DNA of 64,000 nt, taken from positions 186,001 through 250,000 of the forward strand of contig RHPI01002204.1 in NCBI GenBank assembly GCA_009103225.1, read 5' to 3'. A model generated the notes under the pieces. It was not told the origin of the DNA. It searched no databases and saw only the letters and a program-made list of their open reading frames with translations. Below, one piece after another: positions 556 to 36,912 of this stretch (positions are counted from its first letter, which is position 1; the number at the start of each line of letters is the position of its first letter). Source of the DNA: Chlorokybus atmophyticus (Eukaryota > Plantae > Mesostigma and Chlorokybus algae). A program made the translations under genes and the position numbers.

Positions 556-842
556 TGCTTTGCTCTCCAGGACCGCCATGTGTCCTTTCAGGCGCTCGAA
601 CACCTGGCGGGGGGGTGGGCCGATCACGTGCGAGAGACCAAGGCAGCACACACCGCCCTCTATATAATCAGCCATATGGAGGAGTATGCAGCGGTCACTG
701 TGGAGAATATTCCAGTAGTCGCCAACGCTACCTCTTGGTCCCATGGCATTGGACCACTGGCTACAGGCCAGACGCGAGAACAACTTGAGGCTCTCCTTAA
801 CAAGTGGAGGAGTTCCGCTTTAGCGTGAAGGAAGGGCGTTTG

Positions 843-1268
843 TGTAGAGAGTCATTCCTACGTACGATCAGCATCGACCCTCCACACATGAGTAGAAGGT
901 CGTAAGGACGAGCACTAGGTCCGGACTTAGCAAGATGGCATCGTCGGACCAGACTCCGGACTCCAGACTGGAGCCTTACTAACTGCTTCGTATCTCCGCG
1001 TATACTTACTCATATTAGGCGTGTGAGAGCTTGTTGGAAAGCTCTGATTGTAAGGAAGACAACACAGCTTAGAGCGCGTCAAAAGGCTGAGTATAGCTTA
1101 CGCAGTGCTTGCAAACGTAGACGTGTGTGTAACTGGCTGGTATAAGAACCAGCGAACAACTTGTAATAGATTGAATGTGATGTGACTTGTGTATGCTCTG
1201 GTGGCGGTAGCTCTGTCTCTGTGCATCTATGCTTGCCTCAACTACATGTGCATGCTAGTCCTTCAACA
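843..1268 (+). repeat. Copia LTR 1 (426 bp)
   Basis: TGTAGAGAG...CTTCAACA, near-identical to 5327-5750 and 9832-10270, followed by the PBS. Confidence 0.93.
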
Positions 1269-1281
1269 GGTTATGGGCCCA
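1269..1281 (+). promoter_or_regulatory. Primer-binding site of the half-tRNAiMet type (second copy at 5751-5763)
   Basis: GGTTATGGGCCCA directly after the LTR. This matches the PBS type of copia/Ty5/Osser-like elements primed by the anticodon-stem region of initiator tRNA-Met (established knowledge). Confidence 0.8.
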
Positions 1282-1396
1282 CACTACGCTTGAGGAGTGT
1301 GAGACTAGCTTGTGTGCATAGTAGTTCTACACTACGGTAGCTTGTTGGTAGCAGAGCCTTGGGTGTCAACTGCAAGTGAAGGCAGGCACGACAAAG

Positions 1397-4300
1397 ATGG
1401 AGGCGATATACGACAAGGGGCAGATTGCAAAGCTGGACACCGACAACTACAACACATGGTGCGTGGAGATGAAGGCCTTGCTCATCCACAAGAAGGTGTG
1501 GAAGTACGCTGATCTGAAGGCACCACCACCAACACCAGGAGCGAACACTGTGTGGTCAGAGCATTCAGCAGAAGCACACTCTTTGCTTGTGTTGAACAGC
1601 AAACCGCATCACTTTCCCATGCTCACTGCATGTGAAGATGGTAGACAAGCTTGGGAAAAGCTATCAGCCGTTTTCAGAGCCAAGAACAATGCCAGAAAGT
1701 TGCATCTACGCAAGCAGCTCAGCGCACTCAGGAAGGAGGCAGCAGAACCCATCACGAAGTATGTTGCGCGCGCGAGAGAGCTGTGGGCGGACCTCATCAA
1801 CGTCGGCCACAACATGGGGGAGACGGAGGTAGTGCTGGCCATTGTTGCAGGGCTACCAGCAGAGTACGAGGTCGTCGCAACCCTGCTGGAGACGTCATCA
1901 TCGGAGTTGACGTTGGACGATGTGCTACCGAAGCTGCTCACCGTGGAGCAGAGGGTTGTGAAGAAGGACGAGCAAGCGGATGCCGTCGCCTTCTACACCG
2001 GCAAGCACGCAAAGAAGAGCAACCATGAAGAGAAGTACAAGGGCAACAAGCCAGGCAATCCTCGTCACAAAGACCTCACATGCCACTGATGTGGTTGGAA
2101 GGGACACATTGTGAAGGACTGTAGGAAGAAACAACAGGGGCAACCTAGAGCAAGCACCAGCAACAGCGGCAACGAGCACCAACACAAGGAGAAACATGTC
2201 GCCTTCACTGCATCCAGTTCGAGGGCGGGCACAGCTTTCTGGGTGGTGGACTCTGGCTGCGATCGTCATCTCACACCAAACAAGGAGGTGATGGAGGGCT
2301 ACAGGAAGCTGACGTCCACAATCAAGGTGGCGGGCTTCGGTGGCGAAGTACTGGTGGCTGAGGGAGTTGGCAACGTGCGACTCCAGTGCAAGGTTGGTAA
2401 CACACTACGCGAGGTGTTGTTACGCAACGTCCTGCATGTTCCTAAGGCTATTGCGAGTCTATTCTCTGTGAGGGTTGCGGAGCGCTTAGGCGCGGAGATC
2501 CTATTTCGGAAGGGTGGCTGCACAGTCATCCTTGATGGGGTCGTGCACATGGTTGGAATCACTGATCCGGGAGGGCTCTACCACGTGGAGCAGCCTCAAG
2601 ACAGAGACATTCAAGCCATGGTGGTGAAGGACAAGGAGTCGCCAACATTGTGGCATCGAAGGTTCGGGCATCTCAGCTACGTCAACCTCACTCGCCTTGT
2701 CGCTGAGAAGATGGTCAAGGGCATCCATCTCAGCACAGAAGAACTCAAGACAGCATCAGGTGCACTTTGTGAACCATGCCTGGTTGCAAAGCAGCATGCT
2801 ATGCCATTCCCATCATCCTCTTCTAGCAGTCAGCATCCTTGCGAGCTTGTGCACATGGATGTTTGTGGCCCTATGCGCATTGTGGCGAAAGGAGGGGCCA
2901 GGTACTTTGCTACATTCCTCGACGACTACAGCAAGCTGTCCCTCATCTTTCCATTGACGCTCAAGTCAGAAGTTGCTGGAGCTGTGCGCACAGTTGTGGC
3001 CTTGTTGGAGACCCAGTCTGGCAACAAGATGAAGGCAATGAGGAGTGATCGAGGAGGGGAGTACATCAACAAGGAGTTGAAGGAGTTCTTCGCCAGCAAG
3101 GGCATACGCCACGAGACAACGGCACCCTACACCCCGCAGCAGAATGGAGCAGCTGAACGCCTCAACAGGACACTCTTGGAGCGTGTTCGAGCCATGCTCA
3201 ACGACACAAAGATGGAAGACAGTTTGTGGAAGGAGGCGGTACTCACTGCCAACTACATCCGCAACAGGTCTCCGGTGAGCTCAGAGCAGAAGACTCCGTG
3301 GGAGCACTTCTATGGAGCCACACCAGATGTGAGTGGTATGCGTGTGTTTGGATGCACGGCATATGCACTAGTGCCTAAACAGCTCAGGCACAAGCTGGAG
3401 CCGGTCAGCAAGAAGGGCATCTTCGTTGGCTATGAACCGGGTTCCAAGGCTTACAGGATCTTGCTCGAGGACACTCAGAAGATCATCGTGAGCAGAGAGG
3501 TGGTTTTCCACGAGGGATTATCACAACCAGAAGCAGGCTTCTTTCCTGAAGATGAAGCACAGCCGGAGCATCCTGAAACAGTGGAGGCTACAGGCAAGGC
3601 CATCATCGACGATAAGGGTGAGCAGGACTCCACTGTAGCAGACAAGCAGTCGCACCTGCAGCAGGAGCACGCAGCTCGGAGATACCCAGTGAGGGAGAGA
3701 AAGGCACCTGACTTCCTACACAAGGCACACGTCGCCAGTGTGCAGAATGAGGAGCCAAGCACCTACGAGGAGGCATTGTTAGCACCAGATGCGGAGCAAT
3801 GGCAGCGTGCTATGGACGAGGAGATTGCGTCACTCCATGCCAACAACACTTGGTCACTGGAGCAGTTACCGCAAGGAGTGAAGACCATTCCAGTGAAATG
3901 GGTCTTCAAGGTGAAGCGTGATGGTCAGGGCAACATTGAGCGCTACAAGGCAAGACTGGTGGCAAAGGGCTTCTTGCAGCAGGAAGGTGTGGACTTCAAC
4001 GAAGTGTTTGCACCTGCAAGTAAGCATACCACCTTCCGTGCACTGCTAGCTATGGTTGCTGCTGAAGACCTAGAGCTGCATCACCTGGATGTGAAGACTG
4101 CCTTCCTCTACGGAGAGCTGGAGGAGGAGATCTTCATCGAGCAACCACCTGGATATGAAGAAGGGGAGAGAGGCACAGCGTGCAAGCTGATCAAGGCACT
4201 GTACGGGCTGCGACAGGCACCGCGTATGTGGCACATCAAGCTCACCAAGGAGCTGGAGGCACTTGGCTTCACCGCATCCTCTGCAGACCCTGGGCTCTTC

Positions 4301-5284
4301 ATCCATGCAGACAACAAGGTCTGGCTGCTCGTGTATGTTGATGATATCATCATCACCGCCAGGCAGGTGCACCACCTGCAGGAGACGAAACTTGCTCTAC
4401 AGCAAGCATTCTCAGTTCGTGATCTTGGAGAGGCCAAGTGGTTCCTTGGCATGGTGATTGAGCGCGACAGGGCGGCTCGCACAATCAAGATCAGTCAGGA
4501 GCAGATGGTGAGAAGACTCGTCACCAAGTTTGGGCTCACTGAAGCGAAGACCAAGACCACACCGTTGGCACTTGGCACTGCCCTCATCAAGGCAAAAGAT
4601 GAGGAGGTACTCGACAAGGCTCAGTATCCATATGGTGAGCTGGTAGGCAGCATGCTCTATCTGGCAGTGTGCACACGTCCCGATGTTGCACATGCTGTGG
4701 GAGTACTTGCTCGCTACATGTCTGCACCGAGCATGGAGCACTGGAGAGCAGCAAAGGGAGTACTACGCTATGTTGCTGGGAGCGCAACAGTTGGCATCAA
4801 GTTTGGGAGCGGGAGCACTGAGTTGGAGGGCTACTGCGACTCGGACTTTGCTGGTGACCTCAACAGCAGGAGGTCCACTACAGGCTACGTCTTCAAGCTG
4901 AACGGAGGCGTGGTGAGCTGGAACAGCAGGCTGCAGCCAACAACAGCAGCATCTACATCAGAGGCTGAGTACATGGCAGCGGCAGCAGCAGTGAAGGAGG
5001 CACTCTGGCTTCGCAAGCTCATGGCAGACTTGGAGCACCCCATGGCGTGCATCGTCATCAACTGTGACAACCAAGGAGCCATCAAGTTGTTGAAGCACCC
5101 TATCGCCTCGGCAAGGACGAAGCACATTGATGTCATGCATCACTTTGTGCGTGACAGAGTCACAAGGAAGGAGGTGGAGTTCCAGTACTGCAACACCGAG
5201 GGCATGCTGGCGGACTTCATGACAAAGCCATTGTCACCACTCAAGTTCAAGACTTGTTGTGCAGGACTTGGCATCTGTGTTTGA
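1397..5284 (+). CDS. Copia gag-pol polyprotein, unit 1 (single frame, one in-frame TGA at 2087-2089)
   Basis: Gag N-term 'NYNTWCVEMKALL', UBN2-like 'RKLHLRKQL', CCHC knuckle 'CH*CGWKGHIVKDC', protease 'WVVDSGC' and GAG-pre-integrase 'LWHRRFGH...CEPC'. Also integrase 'LVHMDVCG...RSDRGGEY...QQNGAAER', RT 'YKARLVAKG...LLVYVDD' and RNase H 'YCDSDFAG...EAEY...CDNQGA'. Pol is open for 1057 aa. Confidence 0.92.
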
Positions 5285-5326
5285 CTACAGGAGCAAGCGT
5301 TGGAGGTCAAGCTGCTCGCGTGGGAG

Positions 5327-5750
5327 TGTTGAGAGTATTCCTACATACGATCAGCATCGACCCTCCACACAGGAGTAGAAGGTCGTAAGGACGAGCACTA
5401 GGTCCGGACTTAGCAAGATGGCATCGTCGGACCAGACTCCGGACTCCAGACTGGAGCCTTACTAACTGCTTCGTATCTCCGCGTATACTTACTCATATTA
5501 GGCGTGTAAGAGCTTGTTGGAAAGCTCTGGTTGTAAGAAAGACAACGCAGCTTAGAGCGCGTCAAAAGGCTGAGTATAGCTTACGCAGTGCTTGCAAACG
5601 TAGACGTGTGTGTAACTGGCTGGTATAAGAACCAGCGGACAACTTGTAATAGATGAATGTGATGTGACTTGTGTATGCTCTGGTGGCGGTAGCTCTGTCT
5701 CTGTGTATCCATGCTTGCCTCAACTACATGTGCATGCTAGTCCTTCAACA
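5327..5750 (+). repeat. Copia LTR 2 (shared central LTR, 424 bp)
   Basis: Preceded by the PPT GTGGGAG and followed by the PBS GGTTATGGGCCC. Confidence 0.93.
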
Positions 5751-5877
5751 GGTTATGGGCCCACACTACGCTTGAGGAGTGTGAGACTAGCTTGTGTGCA
5801 TAGTAGTTCTACACTACGGTAGCTTGTTGGTAGCAGAGCCTTGGGTGTCAACTGCAAGAAAGGCAGGCTCGACAAAG

Positions 5878-8800
5878 ATGGAGGCGACCTACGACAAGGG
5901 GCAGATTGCAAAGCTGGACACCGACAACTACAACACATGGTGCGTGGAGATGAAGGCCTTGCTCATCCACAAGAAGGTGTGGAAGTACGTTGATCCGAAG
6001 GCACCACCACCAACACCAGGAGCGAACACTGTGTGGTCAGAGCATTCAGCAGAAGCACACTCTTTGCTTGTGTTGAACAGCAAACCGCATCACTTTCCCA
6101 TGCTCACTGCATGTGAAGATGGTAGACAAGCTTGGGAAAAGCTATCAGCCGTTTTCAGAGCCAAGAACAATGCCAGAAAGTTGCATCTACGCAAGCAGCT
6201 CAGCGCACTCAGGAAGGAGGCAGCAGAACCCATCACAAAGTATGTTGCGCGCGCGAGAGAGCTGTGGGCGGACCTCATCAACGTCGGCCACAACATGGGG
6301 GAGACGGAGGTAGTGCTGGCCATTGTTGCAGGGCTACCAGCAGAGTACGAGGTCGTCGCAACCCTGCTGGAGACGTCATCATCGGAGTTGACGTTGGACG
6401 ATGTGCTACCGAAGCTGCTCACCGTGGAGCAGAGGGTTGTGAAGAAGGACGAGCAAGCGGATGCCGTCGCCTTCTACACCGGCAAGCACGCAAAGAAGAG
6501 CAACCATGAAGAGAAGTACAAGGGCAACAAGCCAGGCAATCCTCGTCACAAAGACCTCACATGCCACTGATGTGGTTGGAAGGGACACATTGTGAAGGAC
6601 TGTAGGAAGAAACAACAGGGGCAACCTAGAGCAAGCACCAGCAACAGCGGCAACGAGCACCAACACAAGGAGAAACATGTCGCCTTCATTGCATCCAGTT
6701 TGAGGGCGGGCACAGCTTTCTGGGTGGTGGACTCTGGCTGCGATCGTCATCTCACACCAAACAAGGAGGTGATGGAGGGCTACAGGAAGCTGACGTCCAC
6801 AATCAAGGTGGCGGGCTTCGGTGGCGAAGTACTGGTGGCTGAGGGAGTTGGCAACGTACGACTCCAGTGCAAGGTTGGTAACACACTACGCGAGGTGTTG
6901 TTACGCAACGTCCTGCATGTTCCTAAGGCTATTGCGAGTCTATTCTCTGTGAGGGTTGCGGAGTGCTTAGGCGCGGAGATCCTATTTCGGAAGGGTGGCT
7001 GCACAGTCATCCTTGATGGGGTCGTGCACATGGTTGGAATCACTGATCCGGGAGGGCTCTACCACGTGGAGCAGCATCCTAAGGACATTGACATTCAAGC
7101 CATGGTGGTGAAGGACAAGGCATCGCCAACATTGTGGCATCGAAGGTTCGGGCATCTCAGCTACGTCAACCTCACTCGCCTTGTCGCTGAGAAGATGGTC
7201 AAGGGCATCCATCTCAGCACAGAGGAACTCAAGAATGCATAAGGTGCACTTTGTGAACCATGCCTGGTTGCAAAGCAGCATGCTATGCCATTCCCATCAT
7301 CCTCTTCTAGCAGTCAGCATCCTTGCGAGCTTGTGCACATGGATGTCTGTGGCCCTATGCGCATTGTGGCGAAGGGAGGGGCCAGGTACTTTGCTACATT
7401 CCTCGACGACTACAGCAAGCTGTCCATCATCTTTCCATTGACGCTCAAGTCAGAAGTTGCTGGAGCTGTGCGCACAGTCGTGGCCTTGTTAGAGACCCAG
7501 TCTGGCAACAAGATGAAGGCAATGAGGAGTGATCGAGGAGGGGAGTACATCAACAAAGAGTTGAAGGAGTTCTTCGCCAGCAAGGGCATACGCCACGAGA
7601 CAACGGCACCCTACACCCCGCAGCAGAATGGAGCAGCTAAACGCCTCAACAGAACACTCTTGGAGCGTGTTCGAGCCATGCTCAACGACACAAAGATGGA
7701 AGACAGTTTGTGGAAGGAGGCGGTACTCACTGCCAACTACTTCCGCAACAGGTCTCCGGTGAGCTCAGAGCAGAAGACGCCGTGGGAGCACTTCTATGGA
7801 GCCACACCAGATGTGAGTGGTATGCGTGTGCTTGGATGCACGGCATATGCACTAGTGCCTAAACAGCTCAGGCACAAGCTGGAGCCGGTCAGCAAGAAGG
7901 GCATCTTCGTTGGCTATGAACCGGATTCCAAGGCTTACAGGATCTTGCTCGAGGACACTCAGAAGATCATTGTGAGCAGAGAGGTGGTTTTCCACAAGGA
8001 TTATCACAACCAGAAGCAGGCTTCTTTCCTGAAGATGAAGCACAGCCGGAGCATTCTGAAACTGTGGAGGCTACAGGCAAGGCCATCATCAACAACAAGG
8101 GTGAGCAGGACTCAGCTGTAGCAGGCCAAGAGGAGCCGTACCAACAGCAGGAGCACGCAGCTCGGAGATACCCAGTGAGGGAGAGAAAGGCACCTGACTT
8201 CTTACACAAGGCACACGTCGCCAGTGTGCAGAACGAGGAGCCAAGCACCTACGAGGAGGCATTTTCAGCACCAGATGCGGAGCAATGGCAGCGTGCTATG
8301 GACGAGGAGATTGCGTCACTCCATGCCAACAACACTTGGTCACTGGAGCAGTCACCGCAAGGAGTGAAGACCATTCCATTGAAATGGGTCTTCAAGGTGA
8401 AGCGTGATGGTCATGGCAACATTGAGCGCTACAAGGCAAGATTGGTGGCAAAGGGCTTCTTGCAGCAGGAAGGTGTGGACTTCAACGAAGTGTTTGCACC
8501 TGCAAGTAAGCATACCACCTTCCGTGCACTGCTAGCTATGGTTGCTGCTGAAGACCTAGAGCTGCATCACCTGGATGTGAAGACTGCCTTCCTCTACGGA
8601 GAGCTGGAGGAGGAGATCTTCATCGAGCAACCACCTGGATATGAAGAAGGGGAGAGAGGCACAGCGTGCAAGCTGAGGCACAGCGTGCAAGCTGATCAAG
8701 GCACTGTACGGGCTGCGACAGGCACCGCGTATGTGGCACATCAAGCTCACCAAGGAGCTTGAGGCACTTGGCTTCACCGCATCCTCTGCAGACCCTGGGA

Positions 8801-17402: not shown

Positions 17403-17601
17403 NNNNNNNNNNNNNNNNNNNNNNNNNNNNNNNNNNNNNNNNNNNNNNNNNNNNNNNNNNNNNNNNNNNNNNNNNNNNNNNNNNNNNNNNNNNNNNNNNN
17501 NNNNNNNNNNNNNNNNNNNNNNNNNNNNNNNNNNNNNNNNNNNNNNNNNNNNNNNNNNNNNNNNNNNNNNNNNNNNNNNNNNNNNNNNNNNNNNNNNNNN
17601 N
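17403..17601. other. Assembly gap (199 N) flanked by poly-G
   Basis: N run in the sequence. Confidence 1.
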
Positions 17602-17619
17602 NGGGGGTATGGTACAGGT

Positions 17620-21381: not shown

Positions 21382-22713
21382 GTGCTGCTCATGCCGAAGC
21401 TCGGACGCCCACCAATGGAATCCTTAAGTGCTTGTGATTCAAATGTAGGCGAATATAGACATCATCAACAATAGCAGGACCAGCAAGATGCGCCTCCTGC
21501 GTGCGTCCATCTGCAGCGACCACAAGTGCATGCGTTTGTTCGTTACAACGCCCACTGCATGCTCAAAAACGTTGGTTGCACGTTGGTTGTAGTATGCGGA
21601 AACTCATCGTGGAGCAGCCTGCAGCTAATCAACGCAACCGCCCCCTATCCAGCATCACCAGCCGCCTCAAGCCCACCTCATGGCCGCCGCCGCCGCCGCC
21701 CACCAACACCACCGACCAGCGTCACAGCGTCACAGGCGCGACGTGTCATTTCCCGCGGCGAGTCACGCGAGAAAGAGTTTGAGGCGTCACGCCTGTGACA
21801 CGTACGAAATACGCCGGTATAAACTGGAGGGGTCCTTATTTTGCCCAAAAAGACCGAACCTACGCGTATTTTGCGCAATTATACAAGATTTCAAGGCACG
21901 CCGGTGTAACCGCGCTCTAAGTGTATGCCGGCAGCAAGCTGCTCCCCACACGTGGGGTACCGCATCTACTTGTACTCACCAGTTCTTTAACGCTGTACAC
22001 TAGCTGCCAACATATAGAGGCGTTGGTAGGACACGCCGTACTGCTCTCCCTGCATCCTACATCTTGCCACAGAGCTTAGCCAGCAAAGGATCTATGGCGT
22101 AAATCGCAAATGATTGCATGTCTCGCAATCACGGCACCAATTATCTCACGAAATGCTCACGCAAAGTACAAATGCATGCAAACCGCACAGATTGTGAATT
22201 GTGGTATGTGTTGGATGGTGTACAGTTGAGTAGGGTGGTAGTTACGTATGGTGGCAGCACGATCAACTAGCGGTGCGGCTGATTGGGCGTGTGACTGGGC
22301 CGGCCGGCATAGTGCACCAAGACACATCACACGCGCACCACGCACAACGGCCCAGTCACATACGGCACCCGCGCCTGCCGGGCTGCGCGGCCTGCCTGCC
22401 TCTCATTGGTTAGGCGGCAATAGGTATCGGCCGTTCGATCTGTCACAACAAATCTCGCTGAATGATACGCGACGCGCGGCATTGCAGCACAGCATATGGC
22501 GTCACTTGATCAAATATCGTATGATGTGCTAGCATACGACATCATATGTCGCGATATGCTCAACAGCGTATGTTGGATATCACACATATGGTATCCTGCG
22601 TGGAATGCGCTTCAGTTCAGGTCAATCAAACATGATTTTCGGTTCCGTCATAGTAATTGAGGTTATCCATCACATTTTAACTGAACTCTGCCAACAAGAA
22701 ATTTACGACATGC

Positions 22714-22850
22714 CATGCGACATCGCACCATACCGTTCCATATCATAACATGTGGTGTCACAGCCGAAATATGTCGTCATATGATGTCATATGACGTAAT
22801 ATGGCGCGGCGTCGCTGGACATCGTGAGTTCCCTGTGCAACATGTTAACA
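22714..22850 (+). repeat. Left arm of an imperfect inverted repeat of about 140 bp (partner 25238-25385)
   Basis: For example GGACATCGTGAGTTCCCTGTGCAACATGTTAACA versus TGTTAACATGACGCACAGGGAACTCACAATGTCC, and CATATCATAACATGTGGTGTCACAGC versus GCTGTGACACCATATGTTATGATATG. Confidence 0.85.
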
Positions 22851-22930
22851 GAGATTAAGTCAAACTGTGGTTCGTGCGTAATTTGTCCTGCGTATGATGG
22901 GATATCATACGCGCCCGGGCGATATGATCG

Positions 22931-25237
22931 ATGACTACCACGGCCCGGAAACCAAGTCGCATGCAAGCTCTTGGACAGCAGTGACGCCAAGATTGTCGAG
23001 CTTAGCGGCCGCGTTGTTTCATTTGTGCATTGCGACGTCTTCTTTCTCAGGTCCATGGCGGGTTCTCGGCGTGTTGCCACCTTCGAAAATTACTTTGTCC
23101 GTTGCATCTACGGATGCAACCTCACGGGCATACACAAAGGCTGGATCGCCAGAGTGGGAGTGCAAAACTTCAGGTCTCACCTTACTAGCGGTGTCCACAA
23201 GGACGCCTTCAATGCATTAACACGCCAACAGCAAGACGACTTGCTGAAGTACTGGTTGGATCTGGTGAGTCCTACATGGTAGCATGCATTGTTGTGCATG
23301 TTTGAATAGTAAACTGTTCCACAGCTTGAGAGTTTAACAATGCGCAATGTCACTGTCAATTTACTTTGAGTGCATGTTGCTGTCTGCATGATGACACATG
23401 GGATGGACTTATGTGGGATTGTCATCATCTATGTACTTGTTGCCACTTAGGGTCGGGCTGCAGTGGCACGACACAACTTCAATCCTACAGTGGGTGCTTT
23501 TATGCCAGTTGCTGGAATGTGGCCTTTGCAGCAAACAACCCCCCTGCCACCGTCGCTGCATGATGTTCTGCACCCTGTTGAAATCTCATACGATCTTAAT
23601 CTTATTGAAGACACCAATGCCAGTGCCTTGACGGTGCCCACAGGTATGTGACTGCTTCGTGGTGACATTAACAGTTTCATTCAATGCATGTATCCCAACA
23701 GGTCTTCGTGTGACTCCGTCTAAGCGCCGTAGGACTTTGTCTATGGCGCCTGATACTCCCACCACGTCTTATGTCACTGACGCTGAAACAGGTGATCAAT
23801 GTCATCGTTGCAGAGGTTCCCACCTGATCCGTGCACTATATAAACGCAGGGGAAGCAATGCCGCGGTTGCCAACTCACCAATTTACACCTGAGCTTATGC
23901 GTGCTGCTATCGACACCTTCAGTGGCCACCTGACTCGTGAAGTACAAAACAACGCTCGTCTACAAAACGAAAGTAAGGGAAATTGTGCCATTGTTTTGAC
24001 ACACACCACTGATGGCATTTTAAACTAGTTGACGAGAACACAGTCCTTCGCGAGCGTAACCTGAAGCAAGCAGAGCAGCTACGCCACAACCAGACACAGC
24101 CTGATCCCCAGATCGCTGCAAAGCTGTTGAAAATGATCGGTGAAATCAATGGTCTGCGTGCAGGCCATGCTGCTGCAGAACAACGCTCTGCTGACCTGGA
24201 GCGTGCATTACACGAAGAGCGTGCTGAGCACGTTTAAATGACAGAAAGTGACAAAAACGCAGACGCAGCAAGCATCGTGGGTTTACGCAAGCAGCTGACA
24301 GAAGTTTAGCGCAGGGCCACACAGTTGCAGCAACACAATGAGCGTAATGATGCAAAATTGGCGCGCTTGCAATGCCAGATTGGAGAAGCCAACCAGACAA
24401 TTGCTGCACAAAAAAAAAAAGGTGTGTGTTCCTGCACTATTAGATTTTCCAGCAACTGACTTTCCTGTAGATCTCAGAGTTGACAAGCGTCCTGCGTCTT
24501 TATACGGCAAACTGGCGATTTCGTGAGCGTGTTGAACCCAATGGCGTGCAATTCGAGAGCTTTCAGCAGGAACTGGAAGTCACTAGAAAGGAGTTGGACA
24601 GCTTGGCAAAATACATGTTGAAAGAGATCGACCTTGACGGACAGGTACTGAACAATTACAATTATGACAATTATTAACAAATGCAACACTTTGGTGTTCA
24701 TTGGTTGGTGTGCCAAGTATCGCTCCTTAATCGCAGAATTGTTAAAAGGCAGCTGCAACTGCAACTATACCAAACACTCTGGGAGAAGCTTTGTACCTAC
24801 CTCTGCACAGTTGCCCCGTTGCTGCGTGAAACAGCAACAACCGAAGAAATGCAGAAACATGTGCGCCAGGACTACAAGGGCAAGCGCGTGGTAGACAGTG
24901 AAGACAACACATGCGGGATCTGTTGCGAGCAGAAGCCAGTGGAAGTGTTGTTACCAATGCCATGTTGCGGAGCTACACTGTGCCGTCAGTGCTTGAAGAA
25001 GCTGCGCACATGATCTCACCCTCAAGTTGAGTGTCCTTTCTGCCGCCGCTTTCAACTTATTTTTATGCAGCGCCCACCACGTGGTGCAGAGCTCCCGGAT
25101 TTCCCTGTATATGAACTCAGCAGCAGTGACGATGATGAGGATGTTGACACACACAATACCGGTGCTGCTGGCGCTGGGCCTTCGCAGCCACCCCCCCCCC
25201 TGAGTAGACCTGTATCATGGAACCCGTTTTGCTCGTG
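22931..25237 (+). pseudogene. Spliced gene: N-terminal C2H2-like zinc finger, long coiled coil, C-terminal RING-type finger, acidic tail
   Basis: 'RCIYGC...NFRSHLTSGVH', heptad-rich exons, and RING 'CGICC...PCCGATLCRQC...*SHPQVECPFCR' (24912-25043). Short (about 55-75 nt) GT-AG introns and several premature stops. Confidence 0.7.
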
Positions 25238-25385
25238 TGTTAACATGACGCACAGGGAACTCACAATGTCCATTGACGTCGCGCGACATTTTGCCATATC
25301 TTGCTATATGACATCATATGTTGGCATATCAATCGCTGTGACACCATATGTTATGATATGGAATGGTATGGGGCAGTGTCGCATG
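25238..25385 (-). repeat. Right arm of the imperfect inverted repeat (partner 22714-22850)
   Basis: Reverse-complement match to 22714-22850. Confidence 0.85.
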
Positions 25386-25842
25386 ACGAGTTCTTGCATA
25401 CGTAGCATACGTACATTTATGAAGCTCACCACCAATATGCACCCATTGATTATATCGACACCAAAGCATGGTGTCACACAAACTGTCCAACACACATGGT
25501 GACCTACTCAAACAACAGCCAGTTTCACTCTTTTTTCTTTTTCTTATTGCCAAAACCGCTACCACTACGTCGGCGCGCCCAAAATGCTTTGAACCTCGCT
25601 GGGTTGCCTTCATCCATATTGTAACCTTTGCACCCTCGAGAGTCGTATTGGGCGATATACATAGCTTCTAACCAATCTATTCGCGCCTTGCAATGNATGT
25701 CGTGAGTTCTTGTATATGTAGCATACGTACATTTATGAAGCTCACCACCAATATGCACCCACCTGTATCATATCGACACCAAAGCATGGTGTCACACAAA
25801 CTGTCCAACACACATGGTGACCTACTCAAACAACAGCCAGTT

Positions 25843-26195
25843 TCACTCTTTTTTCTTTTTGTTATTGCCAAAACCGCTACCACTACGTCGGCCCGCCAAA
25901 AATGCTTTGAACCTTGCTGGGTTGCCTTCATCCATATTGTAACCTTTGCACCCTCGAGAGTCGTATTGGGCGATATACATAGCCTCCAACCAATCTATTC
26001 GCGCCTTGCAATGTCCTTCATTTAATACTTCAAACTGCACTTGCTCTTCAAAAGGTTTACTGCTATCTAAGTCAGGCAACATTTTCTTAGGCGGGTGTCT
26101 ACGATGTTCCTCATAACGTCGACCTGGGTGGTTACTTTGACCGATATATACTTTCTGTGTTGCCACATGCGTCAACTTGTAGATAAACTTCACAC
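25843..26195 (-). CDS. GIY-YIG endonuclease domain, intact; apparently the last exon of a spliced gene starting at about 27300-27500
   Basis: 'FIYKLTHVATQKVYIGQSNHPGRRYEEH...WLEAMYI...GYN', containing GIY/YIG, Arg, Glu and Asn catalytic positions. There is no ATG. An acceptor CAG at 26196-26198 is phase-compatible with an upstream exon at 26231-26315. Confidence 0.85.
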
Positions 26196-26230
26196 CTGTG
26201 TTTATGGGTTGCGCACGTTTTTTAATTTAC

Positions 26231-27344
26231 GTGCAGAGGCGCGAATGTTGGTGTTGGCATTGATGCTGTTTCTTGCTGCCGAGGATCGCAAGATCATCTG
26301 AACCTCATCGTTTACCTGCAAAGAACAATGGTACTATGAATGCTGCAGTACACATCCGAGATTGATGTTGAATATGGAACATATATGCGTAGCGAAGTAG
26401 AAGCAAGGAAACAGACCACGGATACAGGATATGAGCAAAGGGAGCCAATGCAAAAACAGAAGTGTAACAAAAGATGGAGCGACTGCATGGGTTCTGGCTT
26501 GATGTGCCCATTGTTGTTGAACTCTGCTACGCAACTATAGCATTCTCACGCATCGCAACTAATCTTGGCAAGCACAGTAATCCCATCATCAACTTGGATA
26601 ACCACACACCTCATTGGCAGCAACATTTGCTACTGAAGCTTCCCTTGGGTCTGCTTTGTTGATTTGCTCAATGAGTTTTTCTGCCTTTCCTTGCGACATG
26701 AAACGCGCTGTCTCCCAGTTGCAAACTTTGCAAATGTGAACCAGCTCGAACACCTGTGAAACATCTGTTAACTACAGGTATTTGGCCAATGACCCAGTGT
26801 CACATTGATACATACCTGATTAGCGTAAACTGGCTCTGCATTATCGGGGAGCTTTGGGTTGTCCTTGCGCATCAGAGTGTCCCGCAGCTTGTAAGCTACT
26901 TGGCGCTTCAGGTCATCAGAAATGTCGATGCCGAGCTTTCTGAGGTAGTAGATGCATGTTCCTACACATACTTGCATCAGTTAACACATGCACCACAGTG
27001 TGTCAGTGTACATTTTCCGCTTCTCACCAGTTGCAATAGAGTCCCTGTGGTTTATGCGAAACTCTTGAGCTCTCTTTTTGGCAGGGCGAATTGACCTACT
27101 TATCGGCCTCTGGCTTGGTAAATAGCCCCTCAAGCTTGTCGGGAGTGATTCCTGCTGAGTCACATGCTACCAGTTGTTTCGATGTCAGCGGACGACCAGG
27201 CGCATCACCTCCAGAGCTACTGGTACGTGGACGCTTAGAGCCAGGTTCGTCATTGGAAATTTGAGCGTGGAGCCTCTCGAACAGGTCTTTTCCGTTAAAG
27301 TCCATGCTGTCAACCAGGTGCATTGTCAATGTAACGCTCGCCAA
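26231..27344 (-). pseudogene. Uncharacterised multi-exon coding region upstream of, and probably fused to, the GIY-YIG exon
   Basis: Open exon-like segments ('MDFNGKDLFERLHAQ', 'KKRAQEFRINHRD', 'YYLRKLGIDISDDLKRQ...YANQ|VFELVHICKVC') with GT-AG junctions. At least one frameshift. No recognisable family. Confidence 0.45.
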
Positions 27345-28073
27345 ACTAATGACTCACAGGTTCGAGATTAAACATAGGCCAACTGAGCCACGTTGTTACC
27401 TGTGTCTGGCTGAGGTGACAGTTTCCGACGATGGGCAGGTGTCTGAGGCAGGTGATGCGACAGGCATGTATGCACAGTGCCCTGCGACTTGACGTTTCAA
27501 CTGGTGTACATTTACAGCAGCGTTAGATATATTGCCAATGTATATCTGCGTGGCAAGGAAAAGGGTCTGTGTCGGCAGAACACCACGTGCTAAGCCATGC
27601 CGCCATGCGATTGGTCAGAAGAGTTGATGGGATGGAGGAGATGATTGCATACAAAGCATGGTTGGATGACGGGTGATACGGCAATCAACTTAATGTGCCA
27701 TGTCATCAAACCGTACAATGCGTACAGTATGGTCATGAGATGCAGTTCATGTTACGCGACATGGTTCCATATCGTTGAACATGGAACCACATAACGCAAT
27801 GTTTTGCAATATCGTTCATACATGCACAAACATCATGCGATATCCGTTGATATCAAACAACGTTGCGCAATAGCGTACCATGTCGCCTAAAGCAATATCG
27901 TCCAACTTGGAACCATGTAGTGCAATGTTGTGCAACATCGATCTCACATGCTCAAACATTCGCGATATGCGTCGATATCAAACAACGTTGCGCAACATCG
28001 TATCATATCGCCAAATGATGCAACATATGTCACACCATTGCGCAACACTAACTGGACTTACCAATTATCAACG

Positions 28074-31000
28074 TCAATCCCCAGGAACGGGCGTCATCTC
28101 TTCAGGGCGCGGTAAACGCGTCAACCGTAAATAGGCCCTGTTTGTCACGCGCGACAACGCCACATACCACAATCCAGGAGCAAAATCTTCCTACATGTGG
28201 ACAACAGTAGTTGATTGTAGCGTTGCACCTTGACACTTGTGCACTGTCATTGCATACGCTAGCTGCAAAGGAAACACAGCTTTGTAGTACGTTTTGCCTT
28301 GAAACGTTGTTGTTTGCTGTATTATTCGGCGCATCCACATGAAGTCTGCCAAATGGTCAAATGTAACTTGTATACTGCTCACATTACCTTTGTAGTATCT
28401 AAACTGCGTCACTGTTCCCAAAGACCCATTGGCTACATCATCTTGCAGTGAAACGTTTTCGAAAACCAACACCTTTGCTCCTTTGGCGACTGAAGGTAAT
28501 AAGTTGAACTTGGGCTTGGGAATCCAGTCATACAGCTCGGGCACGCTCACTGCATTAGAAGTAATTTGTATTGGCACAATGGTATCAGTTGCAAAACGTT
28601 GTCTCACAATCATGCTGTTGAAAGCCAGTGTGTCTTGTACATGTGAACACAATATGGTTGCATCACTTGGTAACTGTTGTAAGTACTCCGAAGTGACCAG
28701 ACAGCCACCTAACGCATCTGCTATCTCTGTTGAACTGGGTATGCCAGAACGAATCTGAATCAAGAATTCAGCAAACAGAGGGTCTGAAGCATGACGCATT
28801 GAAACAGATAAAAAATGTTGCCTACGTAATGGCCACCTCTGTGATGCAGAAATATGGCATTTGTGGCAAACCTGCGATGTGTTTTGGACTTTGTGTCCAC
28901 AAACTGCTGGCAGTTGCTTGTGGTCACCAACCAATACAACGCCGATTGTTTGTAGAGATTCTGGTCCATGAACTTGCTGTAAGCGCAGCATCACCAAGTC
29001 AAACAACTGCAATGTCATCATGGAAAACTCGTCAATAATAAATACTCGACAATGATGTAACAGTTTGTAAGCATCATCCATAGCAGTTACAAACCGGAGT
29101 TGCTGACCGTTGACAGGTATTGCGAAGTTGGAATGTACAGTTGAAGCAGATGAGCTGAGCCGCAAAGCCGCAGCGCCAGTTGTAGCACTGAGTAAAACAG
29201 GTATCCTAGCAACGCGCAACTTGTGAGTGATGAATTTGGTCAAAAATGTTTTGCCTGTTTCTGAACAACCAGATATCACATGTAGACCAACCGGTGTTGC
29301 AATGATACTTCTTGCGGTGCGTTCTTGCTGGCTGGTCAAAAAGAGATTGTTCGCAAACGCAAACTCCTCAACATTCAATGTACATTGAAACATTGGCGCC
29401 GATACATCTGAGTCCGTTGTCACAGTTGAAGCTGGAGATGCAGGATTGGATGATGAAGCTGTTGGATACTGCGTGGTAGGTTCTGGTGCAGTTTGACTGT
29501 CTGTCAGACCAGCTGCAGCCATAGACAAGGCATTAATAGCATTATCAGTGGTCTGCATCATGGCATTCATCATATGGTGAACCTTAACATCATTGTATAG
29601 ATGACGTTCAGCATAGCGCGTGACATGTGTCAACAAACTGCGGTTTGTGTTGTTAATGAAACCCCGCAACACACATTCTTCATAGTAAGTGCGTAATTGG
29701 TTGTTCAAAGAAATCAAATCAACTTCAGAGCAAAAAGTAAGCCGCTGAAGAAGTAAATTGAAACAAAACCCTTCAATGCTGTGTACAGGATGGTAATCCG
29801 CGAATCTAATGATGCGCGGGACAGCTAACTTATAAACGAATGCATTCAGTCTGTCTCTTAAAGTATGCACAGTGTTATGTGGCACAGTGTCTCCATCTCG
29901 GTGCATGTACTGTCGAAAGTAGTTGTACGTTGTGACTCTTTCTACCTCGTCAGGCCTGACACAATAACGATGAATGGGATGCACAATTATCGTCCGTGCA
30001 CGACTGTTCACTATGCGAGAACGATTGTTAGGCAAACGCATGTCAACATATGTTACATTGGACGACATTTGCATGATGGGAATATCCAAACATATCAAAG
30101 CAGCTTCAGCTGGAGCAATGGGTTTGGACAAGCACATTGTGTTCAATATGCGCAATTCGTTAACAGTCAATCCTTGCAAACCGAGTGCATTGGTGTCTAA
30201 TGCATCATCAACAGTGCCACAAGGTTCCATTTTAGTTGTGTACTTGACTAAATACTTGCTCCAATGACTGTCAGTGACTTGCAACACATTACAATGAGCA
30301 CCCCACAACAATAAAAGCACTGGATGTGTGGGAACCACATTGCGGTCACAAGTGCGTGGTCTGTAATAATCGTACCTGCGCGTTTCTGTGTTAGACTGAG
30401 GTCGACGATCTGGTTGTACGGGTTACGGAAAGCCCATGTCGCACTTGTTGTCAAATGCACTGCAGCCACTGCCAACATCAGAACACTTGTGCATTTGCTT
30501 GCGTACAACATATTCATAAAAGACTCGCAGTTTAGAATCAGCTGGTACAATTATTTGCTGATTTGCATGGTCAAAATCTCCGGGGATAAATGCAGTGATT
30601 TCACTGCAAACTCGTTTAACATCTTTGGGATGTAACCACAACATAACATGTGCATGCAAAGATCCACGGTGTTGTGTTTCATACCTGATAACATAGTGCA
30701 TCACACGTCCAAGGATATCCTTTTGCATGATATATTCTTCAGAGAAGGTGCTGAACCGATGATGAAACAAACGTGCGCACTTCACAGGGGCATCGCGCCA
30801 ACTAAGTTGCGTGGAGACATTGTGGAGAACATTCTGCAAATCAATGATCTCAGGGAATTTGGTACTGGACACTTCATCTGCAGTCATGGTGACAAAGAGA
30901 TGAGGCATACCCCAATGCTCAACTCGACACAGCAGCTCACTCAACTTTTGTCGATGCCAACTCGGACATCCAATGATGTCACCCGGGACACGAAATTTTA

Positions 31001-32150
31001 CAGCGTTTTTGATGGCATCATTGATTGTGGCAGTAGGTCGTTGTTTGAGGAACTTTTTAATATCAGCGTCCACAGCAACTTCGCGGCATTTTCTGACTGT
31101 AAGAAGTGATTGACGGATTTGGTACAGCAAATAAGGCTTGTACAATGTGAAAACTGAGAACGATTGTGTAAGACGGAACTTGACATTGTCTGACAGTCTG
31201 CTGTACACGTTGCCATCAAAGAACCCACGATTGTGCGGGAACAACATGGGAAACAGCAGAGCAGACTCAACAGTTAAACCAGGAATGTTGTACGCACCAC
31301 CTGTATCCATGTGTATCAAAAGAGGAACACAAGGCTCACGCAGCGACATATGTCCAACGCGCAACATGGTGTCCACTGTGACTTCAACTGTGCTGCGCGA
31401 AGGAAATGGCAACAAAGTGGTTAAAACGTATGTGTATGCTGATTCACCAGCAATGTTCAAAGGATTACGATCTTGTGCACGAGACACAATGCTACGAATA
31501 GTAGATGAACTGACAGTGGGGATGCCGTCAAAACCAAATGGTTGTTCTGCCAAGGTCTGATATTTCTGAACCAGAGTGTTGGACGATAATAGCTCGCTTA
31601 ACAACTCCAGCAACAAGTGATAAACGGACCGTTAATCATATTCAACTGCTGAATTTGGCCCGAAGTGAAACTGTATGAGTTATACAAGTCGCAAAGCGCC
31701 ATGGACGTGTTAACAAGGGACAACATCTGCACTACCATTGGATGTGTCTCCAACAACTTGCGAATGTACACTGCGCTGTGTAATACAATGTAACTGGAAC
31801 GCTCCGACCCGTGACTACATCGATGGCATTGGTAGTAATCACTATCACACTTGGTATAATCGGACATAAAAACATTAGCCAAATCATATGGTGCAACGGT
31901 GGATACTAATTGTCGATAAATTGGACGATAAGTAGCAGCAGCAGAGTAAAACTGTACATGCCCGCACAAAGAACAACATTGCATTCGCGTGACAAACTTA
32001 CGTTGTGCATCTTGCCAACAGGAAAGCAAATCATCGCAGTCGTCCCACAATTCGCAATGCTGAGACAAATCGCAATGTTGCTCATAAGTCATAGCGGATG
32101 ACGAAACAATACACCAGGAACATATCAACCGCCCTGGCATTTGTCGCCAT
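28074..32150 (-). mobile_element. Helitron RepHel transposase (HUH Rep + PIF1-like SF1B helicase), degenerate; Helitron2/Helentron-type motif 2
   Basis: Rep motif 1 'HLFVTMTADE', motif 2 'YETQHRGSLHAHVMLW', motif 3 'YLVKYTTK'. Helicase 'SGCSETGKT', 'ATTGAAA', 'IIDEFSM', 'VGDHKQLPAV', 'PLQLAYAMTVHKCQGAT', 'YVALSRV'. Frameshifts and stops present. Element termini were not identified. Confidence 0.93.
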
Positions 32151-33918
32151 CCAAAAGAACCATCTCGGCACAGTCCAGCAATGAGGGCGTGCAAAGGTGC
32201 AAATCCACATGCACAATATCTCTGATGTGTAGCAAAATGTTGCGATATGATTACATATGCGGCGATATGGTGCAACATGGTGCCATATGATTAGCAAATG
32301 CTGTTAAGTGTTTTAAAACTTAATAATCAACGTAACGTTCACGCCACGGTACGTGCTGCGATACTTAGTAAATAATGCCGAGGTTACGACCATCAAAATA
32401 ATGCTAACCTGAATTACCTTAACGTTAAGATTCAACTAAACGAAAAATCGCATCGTTAGGCCACCATTTGGTCACGCATGAGATTGATCAAATGGGATCG
32501 CAACGGTGACAACAGCCAGTTGCTCAAAAAGGCAGCAAAATGGCCAATCATTGCAAAGATGCGTAAAAGATGCTGAAAAATATCTTTGCGGCAACCGCTT
32601 ACCAACGGCGACCCAAATTGCTAGGGATTTGGTGCAATTGCGGCACGGTTAGTGGTTAAAACGGCCGCGTTTTTGGCGGTACGAGGTCGGGGCAGGCCCC
32701 ATACCCCAAAGACATGCCGCCACTACTCACCCTCGTTCTAACTAATCCACTCTACCCTTTAACGCTAATTGATTACACGCTATAGTTACTGCGTCATCAA
32801 ACATGGTCAACAACCGAATAAACGCTGGTATGTAAATAATCACAACGGATGTTGTTAGGCAGGTCCAGTACAAGGTATATCAACCTATACAAACATGCAT
32901 AATGCTATGCTTGATTGTGCACTGCAACTTACACCCATACCAAGCATATATCTAACCTACTACATGAATACATACAAGTTATGTCTAGTATTCATATACC
33001 ATAACATAGCTAGCCTGCAAACCGTCGCTATCCACCTATAAGTGTCGTGTTTAGCAGATATTAATGGTTGGATTGTGCATGCTGGCTGCTGGTATTGGTG
33101 GTAGTGGTAAGGTGGTTTTGGTCAAGGTCATTGTCGTCACTTGTACATTGGATAAGCTGTGCCGCACACGCACCTACCCGACTCAATACCATGTGCACAA
33201 CCACGTGTAATTTAGAAGATAAATGCAGATGCATTCGCACACAGAACCAGGCTAGCAAGCAGGCGGCAAAATAGTCAACTACATACACTAGAAGGCTAGC
33301 TAGGGGCCTAATGCAACCACACACAAGCAGCGGTAATGGGGGTGGCGTTGAGACAGGGCGACACAGCAACAAGATATGCGGGCAGGTGATGACGCAGGAG
33401 TACAACCTGCGCGTCAGCCGCCGTGCTTGTCTTGTGACTATTCTTCCATGCTTATTGTGCACATAGTAGCTAGTCACACCTGCTCACCAATTGCAGTTGT
33501 AAGGGCTGCTGTGTTTAGTCCAGTGGCCCAATGCAGCATGCATGTTTTGCACTCGAGTGCGCCTGTTGTAATTACCAACATGTTGTATGTGAATATTGTG
33601 GACAACGAAACAGTTGCAACTCCAGCTTGCTATCGTAGCAATCTGACCGGTGGTGGAGGCAGTCACCAGAAGGCGCACCAGCTCAGTATCAAAGTGGTCA
33701 CAATCGTGCATACTGGTGCAAAGCGTGTGGTGCAGGATCGCGCGCTCCCTGGTTTGTTGTATGACTTCTGCACTGTGCAGCTGTGCCGGGGGTGGGGACA
33801 TGCTCGCACGCCTGCCCCGGCAGGCGGCAGGGGAAGACGCATTGCTGGCTGCTGCCGCTGTGTCGGCTTGCATGCAACGTGCGCTGTGCGTTGTGTAGGC
33901 ATGGTAGGCAATGCATAT

Positions 33919-34301
<383 letters not shown>

Positions 34302-34529
34302 GCAACAAGTTTCCGCTGTCATTTCACCTGTACAACTCTTGTCGACAGTTGAAATTAGGGCAATGTACAACAGTTCAATTGTCACCGCAGGTGACATTAC
34401 TGTGAAGGCAGATTTGAGTCCTTTGCATCCTGCAATGGCAAAGAACTCTGCTGCTGTGCTTTGCGCTGCACCAGTCCAGGCGGCCGCGGAATATCCGGCT
34501 TGTCTCGCATTGGACTGCGGATACCTAGT

Positions 34530-36912
34530 GTGCAAATGTATCAGTACAGCAACCGCGCAAGCATAAGTGCATGCGCACACACTGCATGTTGATACAAGTC
34601 ACAGCCAGTGAAGCAAGAGACTGCACAATCCTGCCTGGCTTGTCCTCAGGAGAGGTTGGCACGGGTGATAGCGCCGGCAGATAGCTGCTGATACTCTCAG
34701 CAAAGGCCTTCTGCCTGAATACACATTACAAGAACTCAACCACACAGAAAAAGAAACAACACTGTCTGGTCCAAAAAACACAACATATGTTGAATGGGCA
34801 CCTTTTCTGAGTGAGTTTTTTGGAGGGTCGATAATACTTGAGGTATCCGTCCCACTGGACTGCTTTGATGCCGGCGCGGCGTGCGATCATCGCCTGCACG
34901 CGGTTGGCAAAGTCCTCATGACACTCGCCCTCTTTGAGCGTCTGTGGCTCCATGTACCACACGTCCGCCACGACCGCCCACGAGGTCATCAGCCTCAGCA
35001 GGTGCCGTGTGAACGACTGCTTACGGCTGTTCCAGAACGCGTCCACAAAAATCTTATTATACTTGATTGCTATCGGGCACACGACCGCACCCAACTCGAA
35101 CGCCCCCTTCTTGAACATGACACAATACTCGTTGTTCACGCACACGCCCTCGGGGAATATTAGCAGCGGGTTGGCTTCGGGGTCGGCGATGTGGCGTTGA
35201 ATCTTGTCCGCAACGGCTCTTCGGTCTTTTGCTTCGCTACGGTTGAACCAGATGCAACCAAGGCTGCTGAGTATGTGGGTTTGCAGCAACCCAACCCACC
35301 CGGGATGCTTCTGCATGATTACCGCGAAGGCCGTCACTTGCTCAAGCAGCACAAAGTCAATCATTGACGTGTGGTTGGCCACAAACACCTGATTTGGCCT
35401 GGGACTAGGACGTGGACCGTGGTATCGGATCACGCCCGTCCACGACGCCACAAACACACCGCACATCAACTCCACCAGCCGCCTCTGTTCAGTGCAAACA
35501 CACGCATGAGGATGCGGCCAACATTGCCAGGGAGTATGTGAGGTGTGTTCCCGCGTTTTGACTTAGAAGATGTGTATATATGTATTGAAAATAAGTCACA
35601 GAGTAAATGACTTAACCTGCTGATAAGTGATTAAGTACATGCATCATTCAATCACCTCAAGACGGTGCTGAAGCTTTGGTGCAATGTCTTTGAGGGCAAA
35701 ATGCGTAGGGAAGAAGGTGATGATGAAGACAACCCATCCGGCCATAAGAAGCAGCAGCCTGCCATGGCAAGTATGTTGTCCAGCAAGCCTTAACGACAGA
35801 CACCCAAAGCATGTAAAATACCCAAAGTGTGTACCTCAAAGGAAACAGGATGCCATAGCGCATGACCACGCCCAACACCCACAAAGGAAACAAGTACCAG
35901 TTCCAGTTCCACGGCTCCGGCGTGTTTGAAGCGAAGCATTTCGTGAACGTGTCCTGCAAACATTGTGACAGTAACATGGTATGACAAATGCTGCCTATGT
36001 GCGTATATATATGTAGGCCTATGCGCCTATGCGCACGCACGCATGCATGCATGCACGCGCAAGTACACATTACTCAAAGTCATCACGCGAGGTACATCAT
36101 GTAAACACTCATGCTTACATCCACAATTGCAGCCACGCCCTCGTTGAGTACAGGAGTGATATCCAGCAACTCGTGCCTGCAAACAGAGACGCACAAACGT
36201 TATCAACACAATGCCCATCACAGTTCAAAAAATCAAGCCATAAAAAGCATCAGCTTCTTGACAATATCATTTCTCTCACTTACAGCGGGATGGCCTTTTC
36301 TCGTGCAGCGGTATCAATCGCGCGTGGCTTCACGCGCGAGCCTGCGAGCTGCTCTTCAAGCGAGCGTGCATACAAGTCGACCTCTGAAGCCGAGTGCGGC
36401 GCAAAGAACGGTCCCTCCTGACTAGAGGGTTTTGCCAAGATTAGTCAATGTTGCTGAAAGAGACATACGCACCACACTGCTTTATGTGATTGTTGGCAAT
36501 GGCTTTCTTTCTGACTGTTGGGTTCCTGACTGGATCGATCTCACCTCCTTTACACACAACTGGTGATATGATAACAGCAATCTGTGGTGCATCCGTGTTT
36601 GCGCGTATGCATTGCATGCATGTAGCATGTTCACACGAGGTGGAACGGAGAGGTGTTGTCAATGTATGATATGGTATGATGCCAACAATGAAGTGATGTG
36701 GGAGAATGCTGCATGCTGACTGGACTACATGCTGAAGTGGTGGTAAGTGCGCTGTTGTGACTGCTGCTTGCTGCAAAGGAACAGCGACAACGACAGCGAC
36801 AGGCAAAACGACAGCAAGCAAGCAGTCAAGTAAGCAGGCCAGCCAGCCAGCCAGCAGAAAAGGCTTCACACCTGCCAGCTCGGCGTGTGACGGCAGGCGG
36901 GTAGAGTGCCAT
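34530..36912 (-). CDS. GPAT9: Glycerol-3-phosphate acyltransferase 9 (multi-exon; start and stop approximate)
   Basis: Exons 'LLDITPVLNEGVAAIVD|DTFTKCFASNTPEPWNWNWYLFPLW', 'VANHTSMIDF' (HX4D), 'FNRSEAKDR', 'FPEG', 'VQWDGYLKYYRPS...|QKAFAESI', collinear with plant GPAT9. Confidence 0.93.

Follow-up and report, generated by a model that had tools for sequence, protein, structure and literature searches.

Does a rolling-circle transposon of the Helitron type need a nuclease other than its own RepHel transposase? Helentrons carry an apurinic/apyrimidinic (AP) endonuclease fused to RepHel; to our knowledge the role of this enzyme has never been demonstrated, and the function of a second nuclease in Helitrons is an open question. 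Here we address it with a locus of the streptophyte alga Chlorokybus atmophyticus, within a window of 64,000 nucleotides (nt) (contig RHPI01002204.1 of assembly GCA_009103225.1, positions 186,001–250,000 of the forward strand; all coordinates below are positions in this window). An initial annotation of the window had proposed a multi-gene Helitron-like element (HLE) composed of a RepHel gene, a separate GIY-YIG nuclease gene and a gene for a RING protein. The three genes are real, yet the copy is dead. The region is probably a single copy, approximately 10 kb in length and recently inactivated, of a multi-gene HLE whose RepHel belongs to a clade with a GIY-YIG companion. Judged by comparison of related loci, the nuclease looks like a long-standing companion of this clade in a lasting partnership.

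A recently inactivated RepHel transposase

The RepHel gene is a pseudogene on the minus strand (28074–32278), recognised by its Pfam domains, by translation in a single frame and by the invariant positions that it has kept. It is covered by three long open reading frames (ORFs) with matches to Helitron_like_N (E=8.9e-23) and PIF1 (E=2e-19), and comprises an N-terminal Cys-rich region (31598–32278), a Rep/HUH domain (30426–31616), a PIF1-type helicase (28194–30338) and a tail containing helicase motif VI (28074–28190). Rep and the PIF1-type superfamily 1 helicase share one reading frame, with the helicase at the C-terminal end, and this frame is broken by two stops. The HUH motif reads RGSLHAH, in agreement with the strand and the RGS-type motif given in the initial annotation; the two-tyrosine motif is YLVKY and motif VI is YVALSRV. 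Structures in the PDB that match the helicase include Pif1, and for the Rep domain there is a weak match to Helraiser (PDB: 7lcc).

The gene is not intact, and the copy is no active element. An in-frame TAA (30423–30425) lies in the linker between Rep and helicase, at a position where relatives have Q, F, H or Y, and an in-frame TAG (28191–28193) lies between helicase motifs V and VI. In addition, comparison by tblastx reveals a change of frame between the N-terminal region and Rep (31643–31604), a segment that the relative L001 encodes in one frame (related loci are cited by number, L001 onwards). The alignment of the relatives continues across both stops, which fall at variable positions. 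Of 68 positions that are invariant among 19 relatives, 67 are retained in the Chlorokybus protein. That so few breaks are found in a sequence which keeps almost every residue invariant in the clade indicates that its decay is recent, and that this is not an old wreck.

The frame ends at a TGA codon (28076–28074) approximately 30 codons beyond motif VI, and a Pfam search found no Exo_endo_phos or AP endonuclease domain joined to this protein, as originally noted. The same is true of the wider clade, in which none of 51 database RepHels carries a fused AP endonuclease (PF03372) or a fused GIY-YIG domain. Comparisons with single helicases do not discriminate between HLE1 and HLE2: the distance to Helraiser, an HLE1 member, is about the same as that to P0012, a helicase that bears an AP endonuclease. 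The RGS-type motif, which we presume to point towards HLE2, serves here as a lead and not as an established marker.

A separate gene ends in an I-TevI-like nuclease domain

Downstream of RepHel and on the same strand, a six-exon gene model (25843–27323, minus strand) gives an uninterrupted spliced ORF of 322 amino acids. The predicted exons (27323–27100, 27044–27028, 26961–26816, 26753–26610, 26315–26231 and 26195–25843) are separated by predicted GT-AG introns of 55, 66, 62, 294 and 35 nt, so that, as a prediction from the genomic sequence, the model agrees with the spliced gene of the initial annotation. The last exon (25843–26195) encodes an I-TevI-like GIY-YIG catalytic domain, supported by Pfam, by a fold model and by alignments of its subfamily. 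The corresponding ORF (25843–26193) has no ATG of its own, the spliced model beginning at 27323, and matches PF01541 above the cut-off (E=6.6e-6; 26.8 bits against 22.6). The catalytic residues Y5, Y16, R26, H30, E70 and N86 are all retained, each of them invariant or almost so among 32 members of the subfamily, and the claim of an intact catalytic site in the final exon thus stands.

The relation of this domain to known structures surfaced only in a fold search, as a sequence search of the PDB with the exon returned no match. A fold predicted from 32 subfamily sequences has a predicted local distance difference test (pLDDT) score of 87, rising above 95 over residues 1–80. Its best match in the PDB is the catalytic domain of I-TevI (probability 1.00, template modelling (TM) scores of 0.64/0.76, root mean square deviation of 2.5 Å), the best entries being 1mk0 and 1ln0. 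Against TIGR01453 the exon scores 28.6 bits, below the cut-off of 56, and the match spans model positions 1–90 of 215, i.e. the catalytic part only. Viral matches of the domain are group I intron or Seg-type endonucleases of phages; some others may be chloroviral, which we presume from nothing more than their accession prefixes.

Residues 1–205 of the 322-residue model have no homolog in the relatives and no Pfam domain, the other exons are likewise without a Pfam domain, and no NUMOD, zinc-finger or helix-turn-helix DNA-binding module was found. A 318-bp tandem duplication (25388–26013) takes in the 3' half of the GIY-YIG exon together with the spacer that follows it; its copies (25388–25695 and 25704–26013) are 96% identical and offset by 316–318 nt from start to start. 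The junction between them is a single N at 25696, and the duplication may therefore be an assembly artefact.

The nuclease accompanies a clade of RepHel proteins

The RepHels in the databases that are closest to the Chlorokybus protein are 33–39% identical to it, and those with a named source are all from green algae (Apatococcus, Edaphochlamys, Tetrabaena and Trebouxia). We collected the DNA around these closest RepHels together with 80 further metagenome loci, many of which, to judge from their contig series, are probably derived from mosses. All three of the closest relatives with usable flanks (L001–L003) carry a GIY-YIG gene of the same subfamily, 1.6–1.8 kb away and on the strand of RepHel. 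It lies 1.6–1.8 kb downstream of RepHel in L001 (Apatococcus lobatus) and L002, whereas in L003, and also in L005 (Volvox) and L052/53/55, it lies 1.6–2 kb upstream, in each case on the same strand. Elsewhere it is found 1.7 kb downstream (L019–21 and L087), 3.9 kb past the end of a helicase (L008) and, in a multi-copy family, 7–9 kb upstream on the opposite strand. Two members of this last family, L048 and L065, have at least 13 kb in common, a stretch which spans both GIY-YIG and RepHel. This shared stretch and the common 3' end of five aligned copies (see below) support a place for the nuclease inside the transposed unit for the L048/L065 family only, and not for the Chlorokybus family.

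The linked nucleases form a recognisable subfamily. They have in common the signature YIGQS..P..RF..H.R.PP..M..D...PF...E..YI...GYN, and score 85–142 bits within the subfamily against at most 65 bits for the nearest group I intron endonucleases. Most of them consist of a bare catalytic domain of 100–140 amino acids. In a rough tree of RepHel the linked pairs are distributed across the whole clade, with the Chlorokybus protein near its base, and the identities of RepHel and GIY-YIG are correlated across pairs (Spearman 0.58, to be read as a trend and not as a formal test, since the pairs depend on one another). Because the two proteins diverge in step among relatives whose RepHels are only 30–40% identical, we favour a long co-inheritance. 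The earlier suggestion that the nuclease belongs to the Helitron lineage, and is no chance neighbour, is borne out by the linkage in L001–L003 and in more distant relatives and by this correlated divergence.

Several observations weigh against the reading of the Chlorokybus locus as one element with a dedicated nuclease. The position and orientation of GIY-YIG relative to RepHel differ among lineages. Eight loci were reached from the GIY-YIG side: RepHel remnants are in range at three, and no RepHel is in range at the other five (L006, L095, L096 and the short contigs L013 and L014), with PCIF1_WW and RNase H genes as the neighbours of GIY-YIG in L095. Conversely, GIY-YIG is missing from several RepHel loci whose downstream flanks are long; in one family this is partly because the gene sits 7–9 kb upstream, beyond the flank covered. 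Finally, self-comparison revealed no second copy of the element within the 64-kb window, nor is there an empty site. With a single copy only candidate termini can be named, and hence, for the Chlorokybus family, the GIY-YIG and RING genes are no more than presumed to belong to the unit that transposes.

Some of these points would be expected of a selfish nuclease of the homing-endonuclease type, which might hitchhike in Helitrons and other repeats, or drive copying into the empty sites that it cuts, and would be no cofactor of transposition. This is the main rival explanation. It gains from the fact that the nearest relatives of the domain, in sequence and in structure, are I-TevI/Seg-type homing endonucleases of phages and possibly of chloroviruses, as well as from the variable placement of the gene and the members that lack a RepHel in reach. 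Such a hitchhiker would not, however, be expected to stay linked to RepHels that are only 30–40% identical with its divergence correlated to theirs, and a bare catalytic domain of the kind found in most members is without the DNA-binding module on which homing depends for site recognition. On balance we consider it unlikely, and continue to favour a lasting partnership between RepHel and GIY-YIG.

We also considered a host origin of both genes, GIY-YIG and RING, which would have been captured once by this family and would be carried as passive cargo, with no role for the element. Helitrons often take up host genes, the RING gene is specific to one lineage (see below), and the HELIANO report (2024, PMC11417382) describes the GIY-YIG domain of a Sphagnum HLE as captured. 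Against this, a single dedicated GIY-YIG subfamily extends across the whole RepHel clade, its catalytic residues are conserved throughout, and its nearest outgroup consists of viral and phage homing endonucleases and no recognisable host gene family. We regard one-time capture of passive cargo as very improbable indeed; companionship of the nuclease and RepHel remains the reading that we prefer.

Three further observations concern the related loci themselves. In Volvox carteri (GCA_000143455.1) the subfamily is carried by the 'hypothetical proteins' VOLCADRAFT_107728, 106710, 85992 and 89037, and the Volvox loci L005, L006 and L007 are one repeat family (84–93% identical), with Rep fragments near two of the three. 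In L095 (positions 600–8800) a GIY-YIG of the subfamily lies amid tandem repeats of PCIF1_WW and RNase H genes, and 6 kb around it contain no RepHel; this may be a different kind of repeat with the same nuclease. The probably moss-derived RepHels L025, L045, L048 and L052 are heavily decayed, and at invariant positions most of the changes in these copies are such as C-to-T mutation would give (P>L, R>Q/C/H/stop, A>V and T>I); the Chlorokybus copy has almost none of them.

A RING pseudogene between inverted repeats

The third gene is a pseudogene on the plus strand (23055–25235), and so is convergent with the GIY-YIG gene and not, as first implied, on the strand of RepHel. It encodes, in this order, a zinc-finger-like first exon, a coiled-coil exon, a RING-like domain (24912–25043, plus strand) and an acidic stretch resembling a SUMO-interacting motif (SIM-like; 25107–25148, plus strand). 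Two stops (24235–24237 and 24307–24309) fall in the coiled-coil exon, and a third, the TGA at 25011–25013, splits the RING domain. When this stop is read through as X, the domain matches zf-C3HC4_3 with E=1.3e-5 and 25.4 bits, just below the cut-off of 27, and the usual His position of the C3HC4 pattern is occupied by Ala. One putative intron of the gene is only 22 nt long. An alternative intron across the interrupted RING domain (25027–25071) was rejected: it would remove the last two zinc ligands and still leave the TGA at 25011.

The gene is bracketed by an inverted repeat, with a left arm at 22714–22850 and a right arm at 25238–25385; the arms are 137–148 nt long and 78% identical over 149 nt. 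A tblastn search with ten exon pieces (E<=0.1) found no counterpart of the RING gene among 94 related loci. Of the co-occurrence with RepHel that had been anticipated for both genes, the GIY-YIG half is upheld by its recurrence in relatives; the RING half is not supported, with 0 of 94 loci and inverted repeats of its own. Since no related locus outside the Chlorokybus genome has it, the RING gene looks, on this comparison, like a lineage-specific cargo of the Chlorokybus family. That its product acted as an E3 ligase and anti-host factor, as originally suggested, is speculation. Equally speculatively, the gene may hint at a cargo slot for chromatin- or ubiquitin-type genes.

Extent and candidate ends of the element

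Motifs of the CATATG, ATATCGC and ATGTCGC types are clustered in four blocks only and seldom occur in the remainder of the 64 kb; as the motifs were chosen from these very blocks, the sole informative point is how the blocks contrast with other parts of the window. One block lies beyond the RING gene (22401–22900), a second on the side where the RING and GIY-YIG genes meet (25201–25400), a third in the spacer that separates RepHel from the GIY-YIG gene (27740–28075, with the motif cluster counted at 27801–28200) and the fourth at the start of RepHel (32201–32400). Counts across the window thus agree with the similar intergenic motifs of the initial annotation. The blocks bound three gene units, and it is this delimitation that suggests an element of approximately 10 kb. 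The RepHel–GIY-YIG spacer further contains a tandem pair of ~122-nt repeats (27769–27890 and 27895–28015; 81% identical). This pair is rich in short palindromes (GTTGCGCAAC, GATATC and CATATG) which, from their sequence, might be binding sites.

HLEs are expected to end in a 3' hairpin with CTRR, or in asymmetric terminal inverted repeats, and to insert at AT or TT without duplicating the target site. A candidate 3' end was located on the minus strand at 22267–22360, where a GC-rich hairpin (22290–22360) with a perfect outer stem of 13 bp is followed, 20 nt further, by CTAG (22270–22267) and then TT; the signal is weak (z=-2.1). Our interest in this hairpin was raised by the related multi-copy metagenome family, in which five copies with unrelated flanks share one 3' end. 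In these copies (L048:15000–15090, L045, L061, L065 and L072) a short hairpin, GGTCCC..GGGACC, precedes AACTAG and TT, an end which is Helitron1/proto-Helentron-like and not of the inverted-repeat type. A search for terminal inverted repeats between the upstream side (32250–33400) and two possible 3' regions gave nothing longer than 10 nt, and a scan for hairpin plus CTAG downstream in L001–L003 gave no convincing ends.

It could be argued that the locus is a mosaic of independent pieces, in which a dead Helitron, a GIY-YIG gene or element of other origin and a distinct RING unit between inverted repeats are joined in Chlorokybus by proximity alone. The RING gene would fit, being on the opposite strand, within its own repeats of 137–148 nt and without counterpart in the related loci; nor do termini enclose all three genes, the best match between putative ends being 10 nt. 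Proximity alone would leave unexplained why the linkage of GIY-YIG with RepHel is repeated in independent genomes, and why one kind of motif block, rare elsewhere in the window, flanks all three units. We therefore judge a mosaic improbable, and retain the view that the region is a single multi-gene copy.

Apart from the 318-bp duplication, the inverted repeat around the RING gene and the 122-nt tandem pair, self-comparison finds only a microsatellite. A long perfect dinucleotide microsatellite at 33921–34300, with a single N at 34003, accounts for the spurious long ORFs on both strands at 33376–34580. An 81-nt repeat (21841–21921 and 55965–56044; 83% identical) has one copy just beyond the presumed 3' side of the element, and the assembly contains a gap of 200 N at 17403–17602.

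A possible role for the second nuclease

We propose that RepHel would cut and join single-stranded DNA at the ends of the element and unwind the donor, as in other Helitrons, and that the GIY-YIG protein would contribute a nick in duplex DNA, either at the target or in the second strand. In most relatives, where the protein comprises little beyond the catalytic domain, it would be aimed by RepHel; in Chlorokybus its N-terminal extension could serve this purpose instead. A nick of this kind is what is commonly supposed of the AP endonuclease of Helentrons. On this analogy, supply of a duplex nick during rolling-circle transposition is the most likely function, and we infer a nicking role and the recruitment of the nuclease. 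We suggest, tentatively, that GIY-YIG was no occasional capture and has served, since their ancestor, as the dedicated second nuclease of a whole green-lineage group of Helitrons (chlorophytes, streptophyte algae and mosses), a bare I-TevI-like catalytic domain directed by RepHel to nick duplex DNA. If true, this would add a third architecture to those of plain Helitrons and of Helentrons with their AP endonuclease.

That a clade of RepHels has kept an unrelated second nuclease while diverging so deeply argues for a need, in some Helitron lineages, of duplex nicking beyond that which RepHel provides. As the GIY-YIG nuclease is small and separate, it can be expressed and mutated, which makes the question testable. 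Small 'hypothetical' GIY-YIG proteins of green algae (e.g. Volvox) and of soil and moss metagenomes are probably Helitron-associated, and the signature of the subfamily could help tools such as HELIANO to mark the lineage.

Comparison with known systems

The nuclease is most similar to the I-TevI/Seg-type homing endonucleases, which it matches in catalytic residues and, in the modelled structure, in fold. It differs from them in having no DNA-binding module, in scoring below the TIGR01453 cut-off and in its PP..M..D...PF signature. Penelope-like elements are also eukaryotic mobile elements with a GIY-YIG domain, there fused to the reverse transcriptase of a retroelement and presumably nicking the target; the Chlorokybus domain, likened to them here from their general description, instead accompanies a rolling-circle DNA transposase.

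Among rolling-circle elements, Helentrons, themselves members of HLE2, likewise pair RepHel with a second, unrelated nuclease, and both have accessory genes and palindrome-rich regions (PMC4067079). The AP endonuclease of Helentrons is, however, fused to the C-terminus of RepHel, whereas the Chlorokybus protein has no Exo_endo_phos domain and the GIY-YIG nuclease has a gene of its own. A multi-gene element of ~14 kb, proto-Helentron-Pi of Phytophthora infestans (PMC4067079), has a RepHel that lacks a fused endonuclease, a chromatin-type cargo (a SET domain) and a 3' CTAG. The candidate hairpin and CTAG at the Chlorokybus locus, and the hairpin and AACTAG of the related family, resemble its end; it belongs to another host kingdom, no GIY-YIG is reported for it, and the Chlorokybus ends with which it is compared are candidates only.

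The closest precedent is HelenSM92, an HLE2 family of Sphagnum magellanicum to which the HELIANO report (2024, PMC11417382) assigns a GIY-YIG domain. The occurrence of such a domain in a Helitron, the novelty of which had been left open, has to that extent already been described. Both are green-lineage HLEs with a GIY-YIG domain besides RepHel, and the probably moss-derived relatives of the Chlorokybus RepHel, to which it is ~30–35% identical, also carry the GIY-YIG subfamily. The two are compared by description only: HelenSM92 is reported as a one-off capture in one family, while in Chlorokybus the nuclease is a separate, apparently spliced gene, accompanied by a RING gene. From full-text literature searches for Helitron together with GIY-YIG, an old and clade-wide association of RepHel with this nuclease seems to be undescribed. 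The type of element is not new, and to it Chlorokybus adds a streptophyte-algal member with a separate, apparently spliced nuclease gene and a RING cargo.

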